Below are positions 51,087 to 64,000 of a stretch of 64,000 nucleotides of DNA, piece by piece. The position numbers were made by a program, and so were the translations under genes. The notes below the pieces were generated by a model. The model worked only from the letters and a program-made list of their open reading frames with translations. It was not told where the DNA came from and searched no databases. The stretch spans positions 62,001-126,000 of the forward strand of contig JAHLWZ010000808.1 in the NCBI GenBank assembly GCA_020536535.1, in the 5' to 3' direction. Positions within the stretch are counted from its first letter, which is position 1. Each line of letters starts with the position of its first letter. The stretch comes from Pelomyxa schiedti. Lineage: Eukaryota > Protista > Evosea.

Positions 51087-54000
51087 TCAGCAAGATACTG
51101 TGAGCCTGACAAGGAGGAGGCTTCGGCTTACCTTTTGGGCTGGTTTGACAAGAACTTCGGACACCATATAGGAGCAATCAAGCTTCCCTGGTACGGGTGG
51201 GCAGTAGAGTGGAACAGACATCTTCATGGCAGCTAAGGTGAGGAGTACATCACCCGGAATTACTTTCTGGCCAACGGTGACAGAGATGGATTCAATGTGG
51301 CCGGATATGGGCGCCCTGATTTCACCCGGAGCGCATACAACGGGCGCGGAACTCTCTGACTTTTCTTTGGTGCTTGTGCTGGAGTTATCATTTGCGGCGC
51401 CGACGCAGTGAACTGGTGCCGAGTCATCCAGGAAGTGCAGGGTTCTAGTTTTCTGTAAACTAACGGGCTCGATGCGCTGTAGTTGTATTGTAGTAACACT
51501 GAGGGAATCGGCGCCGGGGGGAGGCATCGAGTCGGCGGCGGGTGGAGTCATTCCCTCCGTACAATGATTTTCGGCAAGAAGTGAGTAGTTGTGAAGAGTT
51601 GTTGAGCCGCCGATGGACATGCCAGTAAAGAAAACACGGGAAGTGAGGCCTCGTGTCAGGGTGCCATATTCTTTTGTGAATTCGGCGTTCTTACCCAGAT
51701 AGGCACGAGGGAACAATGCACAAGCCAACAGGCTTTCGATTGGTACAGGATCTGAAGTGCCATACGCAGACTGTATTTTGGCGGTCAGTTCTTCGAAATT
51801 TGCATCAACTGGAACTTGGTTGCGTTTCGTTGCAGGATCAGTCTGAGTTGCTGCAAGAACATTTGCGGGGAACCCATGGTGTGGAACACCCAATGCACCA
51901 TTTAGCATATCTTTAACTGATTGAGGGAGCTCCCACCGGGCTGTATCTGAAAGCAGTGCTTGCTCTGGAGTCATATTACGACTGACCATATGGACAGCAA
52001 GATCTCCAACAACTCTGCTAGAGGGAGTTACCTTGATTACACGACCAAGTGCTTCGTCAGCCAGGGCGTACGCTTCAAGAACACGCGGCATGAGGTGAGC
52101 AATGCCCAGTTGTTTGCACTGATCGCACAGATTGGTATACTGGCCTCCTGGCATTGCAAAGCGGAAAGCTGAGGTTGAGGGAATATTATGGGCGTTGTAA
52201 ATGGAGTACCACGGTGCCCGCACAACTCCCTTCCACGCGTCATCAATTGGTTCTAACCACTCTGATTCAATTTTAAGTTGCCTTGGAGCTCGTCGCATAT
52301 ATTTGAGTGCAACACAGAGGGCCGCGAGGGATGGTTGTGAAGGTGACGCCGACATACACTGAGGGGCGCATACATCAACTACTTCGCACCCGGCCTGCAC
52401 CATGGCAATTATTGTTTGCAATGCAAGACCTGAGCTATCATGTGTATGGAAATGTATAGGAAGTTGGTTATTGGTCGCTTCACGCAAGGCATTCAAAAGA
52501 GGGAGAGCATGAGATGGCTTAACCATTCCAGCCATATCTTTTATGGCAAGAATATGAGCTCCAGCTGCAACAATTTGTTTAGCTACGGACTTGTAATAAT
52601 CAAGTGTGTAAATCGTTTCTTTCTCACTTTCAAAATCTCCGGTAAAGCAGATGGCCATTTCGACAATCTTACCACAAGCAGAAGCTGCCTTGGCAACCTC
52701 TGTCATACGACTTACGTCATTGAAACAGTCGAATATGCGGAACACATCAATTCCACTTTGTGCAGCAGTTTTGACAAACTGATGTACAACATTTCTGGAC
52801 TGACGAGCAGAGGCAACGATATTTTCTCCACGAATTAGCATCTGTAGTGCTACAGTCTTGGGAAGTGTCGCTCTAATAAGACGTAGTCGCTCCCAGGGGT
52901 CTTCACTTAGGAATTCTAGGCAAGATTCGAATGTTGCACCACCCCACATTTCAGCAGAGAAGAAAGAGGAGCTCTTTGAGAGTGGAGAGGAAGCCATTAC
53001 TTGACATATTGCCAGCAGGTCTCGAGTTCTCACACGGGTTGCAAGCAAACTCTGCTGCCCGTCTCTCATTGCAGTATCGGTAACAAAGACTTGTCTCTTT
53101 CCCTTCTCTAGTAGCCATTGTGAAACTGCTTTTGGACCATAAGCGTCCAAGATAGTTTTCATTGATGATGTATCGTCCGATTTCGTGAAATCGGGGCACA
53201 CTACAGACTCAGATGCCCGTGGTGTGCTTGCTCCGAAATTAAACTGTGGTACAATCAATTCAAGTGCCTCTACTTGAGTTGCTGAATCCCCCATAGCAGC
53301 CCATTGGTCCTTTCGTTGACCAAGAGTCGTATTTGTTATGTACTTGATATATGGTTGAGCTGGGTAAATTTTCGGCACGGGCCTGCTGAAAATAGGGGGA
53401 ATAGACTTGCTCAAATTTGCTAGGAGTTCTTGTTTTTCCTTGGGCTTGAGTTCACGGATAGCTTGCGGGAACATGCGCCTGTATTTAGCAGATCTTCGAT
53501 CAAGTAATTCTTTGCCGTTCAAGTCAGCAAGTGATAGAAGCGACTTCAGAATAAATCTACGTATTTCATTGGCTGTCCCCCAAATATCGCCAGGGATCTC
53601 AGTGATTATATGGTCAACAAGACCTAAACTATGAAGCTTTGCTGCGTTCCAACCAAGTGAGGTGGTTATTTCATTCGCTTGAGCAGTAGTACAAGATTGC
53701 CGCCGCAAGAGTGCAACGGACTCGGGCGTCATTACACCAAGGTACCCTGAAGAGAGAATAGCTGAGTAGTCGGAGTAGCACAGACATGCTGCTCCACCAG
53801 AGCTCGCTTCAGAAATAATCACAGTGATGATGGGTACGGAGCATTTCGAAAGAGATAGAAGTAAAGCAGCCATTGATTGATACACACCCTTAGCTTCCTC
53901 AAAGAAATTTGGAACAGCACCAGGTGAGTCAACCAAAATTACAATGGGGAACTGCCACTTTGCTGCCATTCGAGCAAGGCGTCGCGCAAAGCGTAGGTCT

Positions 54001-55732
54001 CCGTGACTTAGCATTCCGCAGTTATTTTTCTCCATGTCTCCCAGAGAATGGCCTTTTACAGTGCCCATAATAAACACTGGGACTCCGGCAAGAGAGCCAA
54101 CACCTCCTCTCATACAAACATTGATGCTATCTTTGGAATCACCATGCATCTCATTGAAGTTATCGAGAATTGCGTTAAGGCAGTCCTGTGCTTGCAAACG
54201 GCTACTATCTCGTAGCTTTGAAATGTCGAACTCAAATTGGGGTGTTTTCTGTGCGCTGGCCTCAAAAAGCTTTGGTGTGTTATCCAAGGCGTTGGTGAGA
54301 GTTGATTTAATGACAGCACGGGACGGGTTTCTCCACAATCTCCAGCCAACGGAAATTACATGCAGTAAGTTTAATAGGTAGTCACTGATCTCTTTATCAA
54401 CAATTACATCAGCACGCCCATGATTGTACACAAACTGCGAGGTCTGGAATCCTTGAGGGCAATTTGCATCATACTCAACCACGTCTCCTTTGAAGATGGT
54501 GTTCAGGATAACTCTCACACCAGAAAATCCAACCCTTGCAGACTCTAGGGCAATGATAACATCGCAAGAACTTCCATAAGCGGCAGTAATGGCCCCAAAT
54601 GAGGGGTCTTTTAAAACGGCAATCACGGGTAAACCTAATGAATGAGTGATTACGTCGTATGGAAAAAAAAACCCTTTACCTTGAAGGTTGAGCTTGTAAA
54701 GTACAACAAAGTACTTGCAAATTTCTCTGAGAGAGTATGCACCCTCTACATGTTGAGTTAGAGGAGGTGAAAAGAAGTGGTTACTCAGACCTTGTATTCG
54801 CAGCCCACCTCCAGCACATGACAAAACAACAGGAATTTGCTCACGAATTGCTTCCTCTAATCCTCGAGTCATAGTTTCACCTTCTACAGCCCCGATAGAA
54901 CCACCCATGAAACCAAAGTCATGTCCAATCCACATCACACGACACCCAGATACTTCCCGTACATCCGCGGTTACAGCCGAGAAGGATGCATGATTCATGT
55001 CTCTGGCTGGGTTTGCGATCCACCTTAAAATGGCGGCCTTCTTGATTTTTTCCTTGTAGGTGTCACCCCCAAAGCAAAATCCAAGAGGATCTTGTGGCAC
55101 TAGCATAGTCTTCCGGGGGGATCGGGATCGAGGTTCCTCAGTCATAACAGGAGGAGTTCCTCGTGGAATAGAAATTGTAGCTGAAGATTCAGCTGCAATT
55201 GAAGTGGAATTGAACATACGAGCCAGATGTGCTGTGTCCGCTGGAGATTGGGAGACGGCATCCAAAAAGTGGTTGTAGGACTCGGAGAAAACGGGAGGAG
55301 TAGCACTTTTCAATGCTGATACAACTTGGCCTTGATCAACCCCTGCAGAAGGAAGATATATAGCCAATAGAGAGTAGTCATCCTTCAATTGGAATTTCCA
55401 GAGACGAGGTCCCAGAGTTCTATTTGTATGTGTGGTTACCTTTTTTTTTGCTACGAATTTCCTTTAATTAAGAAATTGCAAAAGTATGGAGTGTGTGTAG
55501 GCACCCCCAAATTTCCCTCACATGTTACAAATTCTTAATAAATATTCAAGGAAAACAGAGGGACACACTTTGTAGAGGCACATATTGATTTAAGAACCGT
55601 TTCACGAGCATCCCACCAAGCGTCATGCCCTCGCTCTTTTGCGATCGTGTGATCAAAAAACTCGAGCGATTCCACGGCATTGCCGAAATACTCACGGGCG
55701 TCGAACTTCGATGGAACATAGATCCAAAACAT
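51087..55732 (-). CDS. Fused biotin-dependent transcarboxylase (AccD-like CT beta + AccA-like CT alpha + pyruvate carboxyltransferase/OadA + biotinyl carrier)
   Basis: GGSIGAVEGE and spliced LRIQEG (CT beta). VDSPGA and SEASSGGA (CT alpha). DTAMRDGQQS, IKDMAG and HFHTHD (pyruvate CT TIM barrel). AAMKM biotinylation motif at 51219-51230. Upstream exon 55732 plus a 22-nt micro-exon restore the N-terminus. No ATP-grasp domain seen. Confidence 0.9.
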
Positions 55733-55980
55733 GGTTGTGTGGTTTTTTTGTGTTTGTGTGAACTACGACGATGGCTTCGACGCTCCTTTCGTCAGGGCAA
55801 TGTGGTTTTGGGAAAAGAAAAAAAATCCAAAATGAGGGAACAAAGGTTGAATTGTGTTAGCGTCCGAATGGGAAAAACCCGAACGGTGTCTTTCCGAGAA
55901 GTGTTTTTGAGAATCCGATGTTATTCTCAACATTTACAATCAAACACACAACCAAGCAAACGAAGAAGGCCGGCCTCGTC

Positions 55981-58297
55981 ATGGGACAAGTAGTAACTGC
56001 GTTCACGAGCACCGCCATCAATGCAACGTGCTCCCATCATTTCTCTGCAACTTCCACAGATGACCCAGCCGAGCCAACGCCTCCCGCCGTCGTCGCGGAT
56101 ATTCCTTGGCCCACAATGCACTTTGACCCCCGCTCCCCCCTTCCACCTACGCCAGAGGAGCGGTCCACGGCCAAGAGGGCACGTGGTCGCAGCCCGGGGC
56201 TGTCGTGGAAGCGACGTCGGGATCTCTCGGCGTCGCGGGATGCCGCCATCAAGTACATCATCGAGGGGAGTAGCGAGGCGGCCTGGGCGGCCCCGAACCC
56301 CAACAGCATGGCGTCGTATCTGGAGCCGAAGCTCGTCCCCTCCGGGGGGTGGGGCCCCGCAGCCCGCCTACTTATGGGACAGTACCAGGACTCGTGGTGC
56401 GCCCCGTCCAGGGGAGTCGACACTTACGGCGAGGTGGATATGTCTGAAATTAATCTGCCGGAGGAGGAGTTGCCGGCTGTGATGCCTGGGGACGTGGATT
56501 TGGTGAAAGCAACTGTTTTGGAAGAAGTGATGCGGGGCTTTTGTATGCAGAGGCCGGCGGTCAATCAGGACTATGGGGGCTGGTACAGCTTTTTTGGGGA
56601 ACCAGAGTGCAAGAGGCCAAAAACTGATGGACTTCCTCCTTATAACGTTACCCACTTTAGTTATTCACTGAAGAATTCCAGAACACGCGCTCTTTTTCCC
56701 CATTACCTTCTCATTGTACCTAATGGCTCAAACTGCGAATAGGAAACCCAAATACAGTTTGTGGAAAATAGAATCAAGTGGTACCGACAGAGAAAGTGCG
56801 CTTTGTGGGCAAAGAATTTGATGGCAACGGGGTGTGAAGCTATGTTGCTTACTACTGCCTGCAAGCGGGCTTGGGCTGACTGGTATCCAAAAGAGGCCTG
56901 TGACGCTCTGTACGAAACTGTAGCTTGGAAGTTGATATCGAGTATGATGATTATTATTTCGTTGGTGATACATATTGGAAAACCAAGGGTCATGCCAAGT
57001 TTCCGGCCAGCGCTTATTATCATTTATTTGCGGGGCCCATCCTCGTGCTGGGAACAAAAGTCCTATATCGCTTCTTAGTTCCCACTTGCTAAGCCACATC
57101 CTGCATATCATGCTACATTTTAACTGGCGAGATGAATGTGATGACTTGGAAAGAGAACCAGCACAAACAGATTTTGAGAAACAACTTCAATCACGTCTTC
57201 AACTATGGGTGGACTCCCCCGACACTGTGTACATGGGGGCGTTTGGAAATTTTAATCCCCATGATCGCCAAGCTGATATGAGATTTTACGCTCGTAAGTT
57301 AATAAGGAAAAATCAATGTAGTAACGAAAACCCAGTTATTGCGGCGTACTCTCTTGTTTGGTACAGTGGACCATGGATTTCTACTGCACAATTTATAGCA
57401 GCTGTAGGTTCGCTTTTCTTTTGAGTTACTGATGACCTAATACTCCTTGAGAGGATGGAAATGAGGCCAACCTGCAGTGTTATGCATTTTTTCGGTGTGG
57501 GGCCTATGCCCATACGCCACAAGAGCGATTTATGGCTATAAGACTTCACAGCACCCTATTTGGTGAAATATCTGAATCAGAAGAGCAATCCGTTATTACT
57601 TGAAATATTGAATGCGGGCCTCCTAACATCACAATTACAGTTCCGGAAATGCTTTACTGGTGAGGGAACAGTTTCAATGGCAGATGGTTCTAATAAGTAC
57701 AAAGATCTTAACTCTCTACGTTAATTTTTCTCATGGAAATCAGGCTAGTTGCTAATGTCCGTGTTGGGGATTACGTGAAAACTGAATCAGGAACCAGGAA
57801 GGTTTATTATGTGGAGAAGAAGTCTGTAAATGATACCATTCCAATGTGTGAAGTCTCTGGAGTTTGGTTGACGCCTGGGCACCCGGTTTTCGTTGTATGA
57901 TATTTGTCCTACCTCGACGTAAAATACACACAACATTTACCACACACAGGGAGGGATATGGACCCATCCCTTTGAGGTATCGCCAGTTGTAGAGAGGTTT
58001 GTTACCGACTTATTCAACTTTGAACTGGCTGGGGGTCCACTAGCATCCGACCACTCTCTCTGGATAAACAATCTTCTGGTAAGAGGATGACAAAAAAAAA
58101 AAAAAAAAAAAAAGCAATACCTCACAAAGAACCAGGTATGCACATTGGGTAAAGATTGTGGGGAAAGGATAGTTAAAGGGTGGCCCAAAGCAGACAATTT
58201 GGCCGGTACTGGCTATTGGCGTTATGGGAACTCCAAATGGGTTCAGCACCAAGTCAGACGAATGGCAGACAACAGGCACTGTCCTGGATCTGGATGA
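55981..58297 (+). CDS. Uncharacterised protein with C-terminal Vint-type Hint (intein/hedgehog-like) domain
   Basis: Spliced C-terminus FRK-CFTGEGTVSMADGSNKLVANVRVGDYVKTESGTRKV..WLTPGHPVFVGGIWTHP..LFNFELAGG..HSLWINNLLVCTLGKDCG. All joins use in-phase GT-AG introns. Confidence 0.8.
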
Positions 58298-58576
58298 CGT
58301 TTTGTTAATGTAATAAACACAAAAACTGTGAAGCAAACAAAGGCTCTTGCGTTTGGTGTGTGGAACTCGCAGATCAATCTGGCCAGTCAACACAGAGGAA
58401 AAGAACAATCAAATCACCGGTATTCGTTCCCTGTTTTGTGAAGACAGCTCTCTTTGGGGTAGAAAAACTCTCATTCGGTTACCTGAAGGCCAATGAAAAA
58501 GGCTCGTTTTTAACGCTTAGAAGGTACAGTACAAACGCAAACAAAACAAAACAGATAACCGTTGAAGGCACAAGGC

Positions 58577-59423
58577 ATGGGAAAGGACGAAAAGAAAGGA
58601 AATAAGTGCTGCATGGCAGTCTGTTGTTCTATAACAACAACGATAATAGCCGCAGTTGTGGCTATAGGCACGCAAAAGAAACAACGAGTGACGCTGGATC
58701 TCACGTTTCTTATGTGTTTCCTGCTCTTTTTTTATAGTGATATACGTTGGATTGGCGTACCAGACTCTGAAGAATGCACAGTGGCAAGTCACATCATCGT
58801 CGGTTGATTCCTCTTTTCTTTCATTCCGTATACACGGTCTGACTAAACTGTGCCTTTCCTTTTGTGTTATTTTTAGGCCACAGTGGAGCCTGGAACGAGC
58901 ACATTCACCTCGAATATTACTATGGATATGGGTGAATTATTGTTAGTACCTTTCCTTCCATGTTTCTTACATTTCCTCAAAGATGTCTGGGCAACAAAGG
59001 GAATCACCGTATCTGCTGATGGGGTGAAGTTCGATCTCACAATGCTGGACAACTCAGGGGCTGATTCCTCTATTAGTGAGTTGCTCTTTGTTACCTACAA
59101 AAATATTAACCACCTACAGCTGGACCTGCTGATTGTGGTGGTGTATCTGTTGGGAAAACTGCGAGCAGTGTAACGATTGACTCCACATTAACTGGAGACA
59201 ATTCCGATTCGGATTTGATGCTGGCATTCCTGGCCGGAACACCTGAGGACTTCTCAATCACCGTGAAAAAAATTAAGGTTGCCTCCCTTCTTTCTGGTAG
59301 TTCCCTGACACATAAAAGTTTTGGGGAAGATGGGTTCCTATAAAGTTCACGTGTAAGTATTTCCCTAATAAGACTTCCTGTTCTTATCTTCAAACAGTTG
59401 TGCAGGAGCTCTCCATGTCCTAA
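58577..59423 (+). CDS. Type II membrane protein with LEA_2/WHy-like beta-rich domain
   Basis: Basic/Cys N-terminus, TM CCSITTTIIAAVVAIVIYVGLAY, then beta-rich exons ending VKKIKFWGRWVPIKFTFVQELSMS*. The model needs one GC-AG intron. Family call is tentative. Confidence 0.55.
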
Positions 59424-59590: not shown

Positions 59591-62500
59591 TTATGAGAGG
59601 AATACAGGCGCGCTTATACTAGAGGCTATGTACTCAAATTCAGACTTTAGAGCAACACCATCAGCCCCACAGCAGAAAGTCCCCTCAGCACATTCCGCGA
59701 GCCGGTTCAACCGGGCGGAATCCTTCGGAGTTGTGCCAAAGCCCAGTACATAAACCGGTACTCCTGGGAATTCTCTGTGGAGTTCTGTCATCTCGTGGTC
59801 ACCGTTCTCGCACTCCCCATCAGACATGAACAGCAAGACAGGCTCGTGGGTTCCAAATCCACCGGCTTTGAGAATTTCGTGGCATTGCACAATGCCTGCA
59901 GCGAAGTTGGTGCCACCACGTGGGTTCGCATTCCTTGGTAGGGAAGAGGTCAAATCGGGAGTGAGTTGGACCTGCCCCAGCCTAACACTTGCGCTGTTGG
60001 AGTATCCAACAACTGATATTATGTCAGAACAAGGAGTACGCAGCTGTGAACACTGGTTGATCCTATCTTTAGCAAATGCAGCTACTGCTTCGAGTAGCTG
60101 AAGCCATCGCTTGCCACACATTGAACCAGATTCATCCAAGCACATGACGACGAAGCGCGGTGGTGGGTTGGCAATGTTTGATCCAAGTCTTGCAAGCTGC
60201 ATTATCCTGTTTTGAAGGTCTCGTTTTGGAGCTTCACCACCGTCAAACGAGAATAGTGCTTTGACAAATTCGTCAGTATTGCTATGCAGTATTTCAGCTT
60301 CTTCGACTTCTTGCATAAGGACTGCAAGAGACTTGTTGTATTCTGACTGTTGCCTTGATCTAAGACTGGCATAATCTCCCCCATTTATCATTGCGGATAT
60401 TTCAGTATCAGTGAAGCTCCAGTCTTCCCTAAGACTTTCCGAACATAAAAAGAGTTTGTAGTTCCCTTGGTGACCTTGCCGCGCTGTCCTTCCACGTATT
60501 TGAATCTCCTCTGAGATAGACGCGGAGAGAAAAGTTTGTATGACCAATACACCCCCTTTAGTATCCACTTCTTTGTAAGATTTGAAATCGATCCCGCGGC
60601 CAAAACTTCTAGGTAGTAATGTAACAGCCCCAGGTTTTGATGCTTGAGAAATCAAATTGTCTTTGTACTCTGACTCCTCCACAAGAACATTATACCCAAG
60701 TGTTATGTTCTGTGCATTCGAGGATAAAAAGGTTCTGTAGGACTCTAATGCAACAACATTTTCAAAAAAAATTAGAACGGCACGGCCTTTTGTTTGCGCA
60801 TCAGCAGCAAGGCAAGATATTTCATAAAAGTGATTGTGCCTGTCGGGTAAGATTTTTATGTCATTGATGGGCCTGAAGTCAAGCCTGGAAGGGCCGTAAA
60901 TGGATGGCGCATAGGAAAGAGTATTCACTTTATATTTCTTTAGAAGCTCAAGTTCTTTATCGCACAGAGTATCTAGGGTGCCTGTAACACCAGAAATAAT
61001 AGCATACCGCGAAGGCAGCTTTGCATAAGAAAAGGAACCACAAATAATTGAAAAGCCCACTGCAGCCTTTACAGCCTCTTCAGGCAAGGTTTGATTTGAA
61101 AGCTCGCTCATGTATGCGAAAGTAGTTTTATGAGCAAAATAGGTAGAGTAATCATAGGCCATAGAAATTTTCTGTGTTTTGTATCCAATTTTTCCCTTTA
61201 TACGATCAACATGGTATGGGGGACCTGAGCGAAAGTTCTGTGCATCAGCAACCATTTGGCAAATTTGGCAATCAAAGAGAGGCTTAAAATCGGGCATTTT
61301 GGTAACCAGGGTTCGATAACACGTTTGTTGTTGTACTTTGCGTGCACTAAAATGTGGATCAGAATAATGATCCCACACAAACTTAATTAGTTCATAGCAT
61401 TCAGGTTGTGTCAGTAAGGCAGCTGGCATATAGGTGCCCCCTAAGAAATTGTCACTGAAGAACACATCAACTTCGTCAATCAATAGTACTCGCTTCCGCG
61501 TCGGTGTGGCAATTGGTCTACAAGCAGTAGAATTGTTCAAGAAACTTGTCACTCGATCCCTTACATTTCCTTGTGCATTGATGATTTTTTCACAAAGTGC
61601 ATTGACTGTAGAATATGAAATTCTTTCTCGTGTGCGAAAAATTTCAAACAGGAAATTGAAGGCTTGGCTGTCACGAGAACTTAAATACTCAGAATATGAA
61701 ACCACATCCACATCATAGCCAAGAATGGCAAAGAGAGTAGCGGTAACTCCCAACACGACTGATTTGCCTTCTCCTGTACCAATTTGAATGAAGTGACTTC
61801 TAGGAGTACACAATGACTTGTCATGGCTAAGAAGTTGGAGAATTGCCACTATCTGAACACTGTGGGGTTTTCTAAGAAACTCGATTTGTGTGAAAGTTTG
61901 ACTTCTATTGTTGAGAGTCCAAAGAGAAAATATGTATGCCATAACAATAGGCAAACGAGATGGATCTCTTGGAAGTGTTGTAGAAATTGCTAAAGCTTCT
62001 GATTTCAGATGTGTAAGATCCATGAATAAATTCTGCTTAACAAGGGAGTTGTATTTGGACTCAAACTTCTCGAAGACAGATTTTAGCTCAGGCCATTTAA
62101 TTCCCGTTTTCGCTGACCAACTCTCCGAGCCAAGTAAGCCGAGAAGAGGACCTTTCATTTGTTGTGTCTTAAACTGTGAAATTGTATGATCGATTCCTTG
62201 GTGTGCTATTTGCGCTGACATTATCTTGTTTCGAAGCCATTCAAACTCGGCATTTTCTGAAAGAATCTGCGTTCCAGTAATTCCAGAGGTCTCCAGTTCT
62301 CCAGCCAGTCTCGTTTCTACTTCTTGGTCGTTATTATTTTTCCTTATGAACTCACTAATTGTGACTTCAATTTGCGCTTTTAGTTCCTTTTCAATGGAGG
62401 GGATTTTTTCTGCAACGCCACGAATATTACACAGAAGCTGTGCCATACTTATTGGATCATTTTCTTGTTTCGTGAGTGCAATCTTAGATTGAATACTTGA

Positions 62501-64000
62501 GAAAACATGCTTCTTCACGGTGTTTGCCGGGTTAACACCTACAAATGAGCACAGGCAAGCGCTTCTATCGCATTTCAGGAGCACACCGGCCACAACTTCG
62601 AGCTTTTCCGTGTCCCAGGCCTTAATTGCCTGCTGCTCGATGTCGGAAAATTGTTTTCCAAGGATTTCTATGGGGTCAAATAGAACTTGGATTTGTGGTG
62701 AAATTGAGTGCAATTTCCTGGCATCCAGTTGCTTTCGGGAGAGCTCTTCCACGACATCATATCGCTCAGATTTAAGCGCCTCTCCAAATTCACGTTGAAT
62801 TGAACACAAAGCCTGATTGGCGAGATCTACTCCCTCTTCAAAGGAAAAGAACTTTGCTTGCATTTGAAGGTGTTCAACAATCTTTGACAAAATCTCCTGG
62901 AGAAGGCCCAAGGACTGCAAAAAGCGGAGATGATTTCCCACTGCTAAAAGGTCACGGTGTGTAAGGGCAGATTTGAAGCTGAGTTCAACTTTATGACTTG
63001 CCTCGGCAGATAGTTTCACCAAGGAAGTTCCTTTTTCTGCTTGCGCCTTTATAAACTCCGCAAATTCCCGTGGAATTTTGGGTGTGGTGACTTCAGGGGG
63101 TGGCTGAGGTACAGAACTCCGAGAAAATTGTTTCAAAGCATGATGGTACGCACAATACATGTTATTGAAGATATAACTGTATATTTCTGCTTGGGATGAT
63201 TTAACACTCTCTGGAGCCATTTCTTCAAGTGCCTTGCTTATGCAAAGACTTCGTTTTACTTGCTGTGCGTCAACTGACTGAAGAAATAAAACGAGGGGTT
63301 TGAGTTCAACTTCCTTCTGTAGGATAGTGAAAGCTTGAAAGACATCGGCCATTTGTGGACTGAATTCTTCATTTACTTGGATTGATTTTAGAACAGAATT
63401 TAACTTGGTTTCTAAGGTTGCCGCTATCACTTGGAGGGTCTCTTCAAAAAAATGTGTGTCACACTCTAGAAGGTGCAATTTCCTTTCGACACTGTGATAG
63501 TTCTGTTGCTGGCACTGTGAGAAAATTTCTTTTTGTAATTGTTGCTTTCTCTGAAGAATTTTTTCTCGAATGACTTTTGCCTTAGTCAACACAGAACCAG
63601 AGAGCTCTGAATGAAGGTCTGATACTAATAATTCCACTTCCTCAAAGGATGAAGGTGCCTCTTCCATAATCGCTTTGGACAGTGATGGGTCGTGTTCTCC
63701 AGTTGATTTGCTGTAATACCCTTTCAGAAGCTGATCGAAGTAATTTCTGATTTCTGCCGTAATAGAGAACGTGCAACTGTGAGACGTGTCAAAGTTGTGC
63801 TTCGAGTTCTCAAAAAGGGCATTGACTCTGCTGGAATCAATATAGGGCCGCTGCCTAAGAGCAGGACGCAACGTTTTCTCTATCAATTGTTGCAGTTTTG
63901 TGTCAAATGTGATATCAAGTTGATCAAGAAGACTCGTTGTATGTGGGTCTAGAAGACCACTCAACTTATTCTTAAACCCAAGTAAATGGTCTTGAGCGGA
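59591..64000 (-). CDS. SecA-like SF2 ATPase/helicase fused to a C-terminal vWA domain; 5'-partial, no introns seen
   Basis: Motif I IGTGEGKS (61760-61780), SEYLSSRD, DEVD (61466-61477), GVTGT, FGRGIDF and QIRGRTARQG. vWA MIDAS DESGS (60119-60136) with GGTNF and FMSDG. The frame stays open to position 64000. Confidence 0.85.
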   Translation of the reverse strand, partial: SAQDHLLGFKNKLSGLLDPHTTSLLDQLDITFDTKLQQLIEKTLRPALRQRPYIDSSRVNALFENSKHNFDTSHSCTFSITAEIRNYFDQLLKGYYSKSTGEHDPSLSKAIMEEAPSSFEEVELLVSDLHSELSGSVLTKAKVIREKILQRKQQLQKEIFSQCQQQNYHSVERKLHLLECDTHFFEETLQVIAATLETKLNSVLKSIQVNEEFSPQMADVFQAFTILQKEVELKPLVLFLQSVDAQQVKRSLCISKALEEMAPESVKSSQAEIYSYIFNNMYCAYHHALKQFSRSSVPQPPPEVTTPKIPREFAEFIKAQAEKGTSLVKLSAEASHKVELSFKSALTHRDLLAVGNHLRFLQSLGLLQEILSKIVEHLQMQAKFFSFEEGVDLANQALCSIQREFGEALKSERYDVVEELSRKQLDARKLHSISPQIQVLFDPIEILGKQFSDIEQQAIKAWDTEKLEVVAGVLLKCDRSACLCSFVGVNPANTVKKHVFSSIQSKIALTKQENDPISMAQLLCNIRGVAEKIPSIEKELKAQIEVTISEFIRKNNNDQEVETRLAGELETSGITGTQILSENAEFEWLRNKIMSAQIAHQGIDHTISQFKTQQMKGPLLGLLGSESWSAKTGIKWPELKSVFEKFESKYNSLVKQNLFMDLTHLKSEALAISTTLPRDPSRLPIVMAYIFSLWTLNNRSQTFTQIEFLRKPHSVQIVAILQLLSHDKSLCTPRSHFIQIGTGEGKSVVLGVTATLFAILGYDVDVVSYSEYLSSRDSQAFNFLFEIFRTRERISYSTVNALCEKIINAQGNVRDRVTSFLNNSTACRPIATPTRKRVLLIDEVDVFFSDNFLGGTYMPAALLTQPECYELIKFVWDHYSDPHFSARKVQQQTCYRTLVTKMPDFKPLFDCQICQMVADAQNFRSGPPYHVDRIKGKIGYKTQKISMAYDYSTYFAHKTTFAYMSELSNQTLPEEAVKAAVGFSIICGSFSYAKLPSRYAIISGVTGTLDTLCDKELELLKKYKVNTLSYAPSIYGPSRLDFRPINDIKILPDRHNHFYEISCLAADAQTKGRAVLIFFENVVALESYRTFLSSNAQNITLGYNVLVEESEYKDNLISQASKPGAVTLLPRSFGRGIDFKSYKEVDTKGGVLVIQTFLSASISEEIQIRGRTARQGHQGNYKLFLCSESLREDWSFTDTEISAMINGGDYASLRSRQQSEYNKSLAVLMQEVEEAEILHSNTDEFVKALFSFDGGEAPKRDLQNRIMQLARLGSNIANPPPRFVVMCLDESGSMCGKRWLQLLEAVAAFAKDRINQCSQLRTPCSDIISVVGYSNSASVRLGQVQLTPDLTSSLPRNANPRGGTNFAAGIVQCHEILKAGGFGTHEPVLLFMSDGECENGDHEMTELHREFPGVPVYVLGFGTTPKDSARLNRLAECAEGTFCCGADGVALKSEFEYIASSISAPVFLS

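Follow-up and report, generated by a model that had tools for sequence, protein, structure and literature searches.

A Vint-type Hint domain behind a lineage-specific helical cargo in Pelomyxa schiedti

Which proteins carry a Vint domain when no VWA domain stands before it, and do they process themselves? The question is raised by a locus at positions 55981-58297 (+ strand) of a window from the anaerobic amoeba Pelomyxa schiedti, the window being the whole stretch of 64,000 nucleotides (nt) that was analysed (contig JAHLWZ010000808.1, assembly GCA_020536535.1). The locus holds the gene Pelo_11079, a KAH37-series GenBank entry described as a ‘hypothetical protein’ (contig positions 117918-120297). 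Its GenBank product, P0008, provides the residue numbers used below. Among the three Hint lineages of eukaryotes (Hog, intein and Vint), Vint has, to our knowledge, received the least attention, and in the searchable literature it occurs only as the tail of VWA proteins. In Pelo_11079 this catalytic cassette, which retains every acyl-shift residue, is found on an unrelated, lineage-specific domain predicted to be helical. By homology, the product is probably a cytosolic Vint precursor capable of self-processing and belonging to a multigene family of pelomyxids (Pelomyxa and Mastigella).

The Vint domain and its cargo

The C-terminal part of P0008 (residues 486-604) matches the Pfam Vint profile (PF14623) with an expect value (E) of 1.7e-21 and a score of 77.1 bits, for a cut-off of 27. 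The match, far beyond chance, bears out the original prediction of a Vint-type Hint domain. It covers profile positions 2-119 of 166, and exon 7 by itself exceeds the cut-off (E 2e-8). The Pfam model of Hedgehog Hint (PF01079) remains below cut-off in P0008 (20.6 versus 29.7 bits), as does the intein-related model Hom_end_hint. The Hint fold spans window positions 57650-58147 (+; P0008 residues 486-598, exons 6-9) and is split by introns 6-8.

The predicted nucleophile is Cys486 (codon 57650-57652, +), which would place the scissile bond between Lys485 and Cys486. It aligns with position 2 of the Vint profile and is invariant in 15 of 15 sequences. The block B motif T-P-G-H (57871-57882, +) includes Thr544 and His547, and its four residues are invariant in the Vint alignment (A3). 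Near the end of the fold, the pair Cys596-Thr597 (58139-58144, +) lies at the structural position of the His-Asn terminus of inteins, as deduced from alignment ranges of the structure search VIA. Family alignments (12-15 sequences) show no variation at C486, F487, G489 and G491, and little or none at T544, G546, H547, P548, W555, H557-E560, N574, E576, G579-P581, H586 and T597. T597 is strictly kept, and 11 of 12 sequences have C596, the exception being P0016 (a Pelomyxa Vint protein with another cargo), which has Ala.

An AlphaFold model of P0008 residues 120-647, based on a 15-sequence alignment, has a mean predicted local distance difference test (pLDDT) value of 70.8, with 80-93 in the Vint part. 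The Hint fold of this model is closest to the solved Vint structure of Tetrahymena thermophila (8r2c). Foldseek places 8r2c first (E 5e-7, root-mean-square deviation 2.2, 122 columns) and ranks BIL2, inteins and Hedgehog (1at0) after it. VIA also favors 8r2c (14.9) over BIL2 (12.6), Hedgehog 1at0 (12.0) and ∼25 inteins (8-12.5), and these matches all cover model residues 365-480. Intein residue 1 and Cys258 of Hedgehog 1at0 superpose on model residue 367, which is Cys486, and in about ten superpositions the last intein residue (Asn) lands on Thr597 (model residue 478); these equivalences are read from alignment ranges and not from per-residue alignments. Since the intein terminus falls on Thr597, with Cys596 before it, Cys-Thr appears to stand in place of His-Asn, as had been proposed.

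At the sequence level, the Tetrahymena crystal structure is the only solved relative, with E 8e-6 for the single sequence and E 9e-11 for the family profile. The profile alignment contains one five-residue gap only, and T-P-x-H-P, G-E-W-x-x-P-x-E and x-C-L-G are shared, T-P-K-H-P being the Tetrahymena counterpart of T-P-G-H; the motif that begins with Cys486 lines up with that of 8r2c as well. The earlier view that C-T-L-G is a Vint signature holds only in part, given I-C-L-G in the Tetrahymena Vint, where the late Cys is one position off, and Ala for Cys in P0016.

Past the Hint fold lies a conserved C-terminal extension of ∼50 residues (58148-58294, +), with the pattern L-G-K-D-C-G-x-R-I-x-x-G-W-P-x-A-D-x-x-A-G-x-G-Y-W-x-x-G-x-S-x-W and ∼15 invariant columns. 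It is poorly modelled (pLDDT 36-55). The Tetrahymena Vint likewise continues for ∼44 residues beyond the aligned Hint core, but with a different sequence, and the profile alignment gives no match of the extension to 8r2c residues 125-169. In P0008 residues 609-630 (window ∼58178-58243), the series G-W-P-x8-G-x-G-Y-W-x2-G-x-S-x-W has a spacing reminiscent of WW domains, and the N-termini of the family are Pro-rich. A WW domain was considered for this tail and rejected (chain 2ysc at E 1.6, not significant; no match to Pfam WW).

What precedes the Vint domain? The putative cargo (56290-57649, +; P0008 residues ∼125-485, exons 1-6) ends with E-E-x-S/K-F-x-K directly before the Cys. The AlphaFold model predicts an all-helical fold for it (pLDDT 78-95 in the core), and the cargo alignments (A1 and A2) contain 58 invariant columns among eight members. 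In Pfam, neither P0008 nor any of the eight members gives a cargo match at E ≤ 10, and VWA and Vwaint are likewise without a match at this threshold. NCBIfam yields no match either, and a cargo profile against PDB sequences gives nothing significant, its sole match, HU protein (E 0.56), being discarded as a relative. The claim that no VWA domain is present and that the upstream region resembles nothing recognized is thus upheld. No PDB fold matches the cargo in structure searches made with cargo and Vint modelled together, where the matches are confined to the Vint part. Scans of JGI metagenome contigs and of IMG/VR viral contigs for the cargo returned pattern matches only, none of them confirmed. 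A stretch S-P-L-x-x-L-x-x-D-I-L-x-x-I-L was examined as a cryptic F-box and dismissed, with an hhalign probability <1% against F-box-Vint families and no Pfam F-box in any member. The exhaustive search for relatives used exon 1, which covers the half of the cargo that is less conserved; distant relatives may have been missed, because the conserved half was searched by a word-indexed tool only. Within this sensitivity, the cargo of ∼360 residues appears to be without detectable relatives.

This architecture departs from the one known for Vint. Vint was defined as the tail of VWA-Vwaint-Vint proteins, judged to be intracellular and given no assigned function (Burglin 2008, PMC2362128). No later paper on Vint function was found in the searchable literature. 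Whereas those proteins have VWA and Vwaint upstream, Pelo_11079 has the orphan helical domain, and it is further set apart by a predicted N-myristoylation signal. As judged from its sequence, it belongs with Vint proteins by its domain but not with the VWA-Vint family by its architecture.

Gene model, family and expression

Why was this domain described as hidden? It is invisible in a prokaryote-style list of open reading frames (ORFs): in window 55900-58400 no long ORF extends past 56742, and stop-free blocks occur in three frames with short GT...AG stretches between them. It is not hidden otherwise, since Pelo_11079 is a real gene, already annotated in GenBank as spliced, and a precomputed Pfam column already lists Vint. 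The coding region (+) consists of nine exons and eight short GT-AG introns (42-96 nt) and specifies 626 residues from the ATG at 55981 to the stop codon at 58295-58297. P0008 residues 22-647 have exactly this sequence, the two models differing in their start codon alone. The P. schiedti gene models come from Augustus, with refinement by PASA and EVM from RNA-seq, and genes have 7.4 introns on average, of which 98% are GT-AG (PMC8887013).

Splice junctions were set by aligning the window to four full-length paralogs, taken from the exhaustive HMMER search with exon 1, and the product aligns with paralogs over its full length. Exon 1 (55981-56646) encodes the variable Pro-rich N-terminal region and the start of the cargo (APNPNSM from 56290). 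Exons 2 (56743-56941), 3 (56988-57293), 4 (57336-57407) and 5 (57452-57591) follow, and exon 6 (57641-57696) contains the predicted cleavage site. Exon 7 (57744-57894) precedes exon 8 (57950-58078), which includes LFNFEL and HSLWINNLLV and whose boundaries almost exactly match a block of the spliced transcript of a paralog; exon 9 (58136-58297) ends the gene. The introns, all on the + strand, are intron 1 (56647-56742, 96 nt, GT..AG), intron 2 (56942-56987, 46 nt), intron 3 (57294-57335, 42 nt, GTAAGT donor), intron 4 (57408-57451, 44 nt), intron 5 (57592-57640, 49 nt, GTTATT donor, directly 5′ of the cleavage-site exon), intron 6 (57697-57743, 47 nt), intron 7 (57895-57949, 55 nt) and intron 8 (58079-58135, 57 nt). 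The length of intron 3 is divisible by 3, and the 14 residues that it would encode if retained are missing from all paralogs. Intron 8 holds a run of ∼25 A (58088-58114), harmless to the gene model, that could give internal oligo-dT priming artefacts in RNA-seq.

Two splice-path searches made independently of the paralogs, one scored by codon usage and the other by ORF length, recovered the three C-terminal introns and failed in the middle exons when compared with the paralogs. Frame 0 for the exons after 56800 (FVGKEF..., EVDIEYDD...) was ruled out, the paralogs using frame 1. The positions first reported for the motifs agree with the spliced gene, both in the Vint part (FRK|CFTG at 57641-57661 with its Cys codon, TPGH, and CTLGK at 58139-58153) and upstream of it (MGQVV at 55981, GGWYSFFG at 56575, YMGAFG at 57230 and FFRCGAY at 57487).

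The start codon deserves separate attention. GenBank begins translation at window position 55918, 63 nt (21 codons) upstream of 55981, and this gives 647 residues. Because the 21 additional residues are common to no paralog, the ATG at 55981 is the preferred start. From there, the N-terminus M-G-Q-V-V-T-A (55981-56001, +) fits the N-myristoylation consensus (PROSITE pattern G-{EDRKHPFYW}-x2-[STAGCN]-{P}). Four paralogs also fit it, starting with MGQTGSK, MGQSHST, MGLGGST and MGATTNK, so that five members with MG-x3-[S/T/N] are counted with Pelo_11079. The suggestion of myristoylation is strengthened by these paralogs and is qualified by the GenBank start upstream of Met-Gly. By inspection, the N-terminus of P0008 (MGQVVTAFTSTAINATCSHH...) shows no hydrophobic core. 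The protein is read as cytosolic rather than secreted because no signal peptide is evident on such inspection.

Pelo_11079 is one of at least 14 family copies in P. schiedti, ∼45-58% identical among themselves, and has no second copy beside it in the window. Members include Pelo_8821, Pelo_18372, Pelo_14740, Pelo_3772, Pelo_16849, Pelo_18870, Pelo_11079, Pelo_17233, Pelo_9027, Pelo_15031, Pelo_10047, Pelo_17218 and one ‘Hint-domain’ entry. Outside P. schiedti a single member was found, encoded by a transcript of Mastigella eilhardi (EP01105_P013037, 358 residues), which comprises the C-terminal half of the cargo and Vint. Among 1.8 and 5.8 billion proteins, searched exhaustively with exon 1 and by word index with the conserved half, all members found belong to Pelomyxidae. 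The cargo was found solely fused to the same Vint subtype, with the exception of proteins cut at a contig end. P0005, which appeared at E 9e-4 in the exon 1 search, was rejected as a member, being a low-complexity repeat protein without the family motifs. In P0003 (Pelo_14740), a long Lys/Gly-rich N-terminal extension (residues 49-138) matches Pfam PAF (PCNA-associated factor) with 27.3 bits for a cut-off of 23.4, probably because of its composition. Thus, the idea of a new family holds insofar as the family is real, but its members were already deposited as hypothetical proteins, one of them named ‘Hint-domain’; the description is new, the sequences are not.

The same genus contains other Vint proteins. 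P0016 and P0017 (Pelomyxa, with F-box-like or WD40 regions) possess nearly the same Vint subtype (43-48% identity to the Vint part of P0008) and likewise belong to a multigene family. They share with Pelo_11079 the lineage and the G-K-D-C-G...G-W-P...G-Y-W extension, which is therefore kept in Vint proteins with other cargo. The cargo of Pelo_11079, in contrast, is unrelated to theirs (no F-box, Kelch, WD40 or GTPase; hhalign probability <1%), and the residue before the Cys is Lys, instead of Ser or Ala in P0016/P0017.

Are the three Vint motifs joined in one transcript? A Logan contig from SRR23919873 encodes 321 residues in one uninterrupted ORF and aligns to the Pelo_17218 locus in six blocks, separated by gaps of 50-218 nt. 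Four of the six blocks are 96.5-100% identical, and the lower identity of the other two is due to their reading across another short intron (∼50 nt). Such an alignment in blocks with introns between them identifies the contig as spliced mRNA from Pelo_17218. In it C-F-T-G, T-P-G-H and V-C-T-L-G share one frame, and so the arrangement anticipated for Pelo_11079 is demonstrated for its paralog. The GenBank models P0006 (Pelo_16849), P0007 (Pelo_18870) and P0009 (Pelo_17233) diverge or end where L-L-V-C-T-L-G is expected. Their last intron has probably been mis-called, because the transcript-derived P0011 and the model P0018 keep the ending intact.

Predicted processing and its alternatives

How would such a protein act? 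Protein splicing is excluded on the modelled domain, which lacks a terminal Asn and is followed by the conserved tail but by no C-extein, so that either N-terminal cleavage or transfer of the acyl group would be left. Differences from inteins and BIL domains are several. The Vint domain is not inserted in a host protein, it has Cys-Thr for His-Asn, and it lacks a +1 nucleophile at the equivalent position, with only the conserved 50-residue tail after it.

The proposed course starts with the 626-residue precursor, made of the Pro-rich variable N-terminus, the cargo, a short, putatively flexible tail ending in F-R-K, and Vint with its extension. An N-myristoyl group on Gly2 is probable. Cys486 would attack the Lys485 carbonyl in an N-to-S acyl shift, with the assistance of Thr544 and His547, and a thioester would form. 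Its resolution by water would amount to plain self-cleavage, and resolution by another nucleophile would leave an adduct at the C-terminus of the cargo. An N-terminal fragment of ∼52 kDa, probably anchored in a membrane, would then part from an 18 kDa Vint module. A relay, or recruitment of the nucleophile, may be the part played by the late Cys596, by the invariant Cys602 and by the conserved tail. We infer cleavage and the way in which the thioester is resolved by homology with Hedgehog, inteins and BIL domains, and N-myristoylation is likewise a prediction.

Several points weigh against this reading. No transcript of the Pelo_11079 copy itself was found in the collections searched, where P0008 is alone in its cluster. 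Hedgehog has Gly before the Cys, and P0008 has Lys, which may affect the predicted acyl shift. The choice of start codon matters too, since translation from 55918 would leave no Gly2 and no myristoylation. The model of the C-terminal extension is of low confidence, and any role given to it is a guess. Finally, no biochemical evidence for any Vint domain was found in the searchable literature, and consequently the activity of Vint is inferred from conservation only.

The last point, together with the unusual Lys at −1, is what a non-catalytic role would explain. The Vint domain could have been kept as an interaction or regulatory module, e.g. as a redox or metal sensor acting through its cysteines, and the protein would stay whole; a conserved set of Cys and His residues (C486, H547, H557, H586, C596 and C602) would suit such a function. 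Hint domains that have lost their function usually lose Cys1. In this family, however, the acyl-shift residues (Cys1 and T-x-x-H) are strictly invariant across paralogs ∼50% identical, as catalysis predicts, and a non-catalytic Vint is considered very unlikely.

If self-processing is retained as the preferred reading, the question is which nucleophile would resolve the thioester. In the thioester transfer of Hedgehog, cholesterol is the nucleophile, a late Cys143 forms a branched intermediate, and the nucleophile is bound by the region that follows the Hint module (PMC12054796). By analogy, the extension of Pelo_11079 may recruit a lipid or another small molecule, and the cargo, with such an adduct at its C-terminus and myristate at its N-terminus, would become doubly lipidated in the cytosol. 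Apart from the catalytic motifs, no stretch is better conserved than the extension, which is kept across cargo classes; the Tetrahymena Vint also has residues in this place, and the MG start is conserved among members. Yet no lipid-binding region resembles the extension in sequence or fold, the extension is modelled at low pLDDT, and no adduct is known for any Vint protein. Pelo_11079 also differs from HhC of Hedgehog (1at0), which is secreted and has Gly at −1, by the absence of an evident signal peptide and of a recognizable sterol-recognition region. Hedgehog-like transfer, a refinement of self-processing rather than an exclusive alternative to it, is judged unlikely.

Attachment to another protein is a further route. 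Tetrahymena BIL2 conjugates the upstream ubiquitin-like domain via an isopeptide bond, independently of ATP (PMC8616854). Should a lysine of another protein attack the Vint thioester in the same manner, the cargo would be attached without ATP or E1/E2, and the F-box-like region of P0016 and P0017 could be seen in this light. BUBL proteins, however, need a ubiquitin-like domain directly upstream of the Hint-type domain, while the cargo of Pelo_11079 is modelled as a ∼360-residue helical domain without any Pfam ubiquitin match, and hhalign detects no similarity between it and the F-box region of other Vint families. In addition, BIL2 uses a C-terminal Asn (its crystal is that of the N143A mutant), which is absent from Pelo_11079. 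The chance of BUBL-like conjugation is therefore rated as very slim.

In a broader and speculative form, Vint and its extension would constitute a portable cassette for thioester transfer that joins Lys485 of the N-myristoylated cargo to a lipid, a metabolite or an amine of a protein. This proposal is possible, though doubtful. If true, it would reveal a cytosolic protein that parallels the Hedgehog ligand with its two lipids, or a conjugation free of E1/E2, on a cargo fold not seen elsewhere.

Neighboring genes and meaning of the family

The genes around Pelo_11079 are of other types. Upstream, on the minus strand (51087-55388, and on to ∼55815), a protein of 1468 residues combines Carboxyl_trans, ACCA, HMGL-like and PYC_OADA and looks like a single-chain transcarboxylase. 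Downstream, a small spliced annotated gene (58577-59423, +; 173 residues, no Pfam match) lies between the Vint gene and a convergent gene (59591-64000, −). The latter encodes part of a 2436-residue protein with SecA_DEAD and VWA/VWA_2 but no Vint. That a VWA gene adjoins a Vint gene looks like coincidence.

What does the family mean for Vint biology? Its practical value would remain limited as long as cleavage is argued from homology. It nevertheless offers a compact intracellular substrate, probably lipid-anchored, for asking what resolves the Vint thioester. Hog domains likewise follow varied cargoes in nematodes and cnidarians. With its own type of domain before Vint, Pelo_11079 represents, at the level of sequence, a further distinct class of Vint cargo beside the F-box-like and WD40 proteins P0016 and P0017. 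The cargo family and the F-box-Vint proteins of the same genome together suggest that Vint is a modular self-processing unit placed behind varied cargoes.

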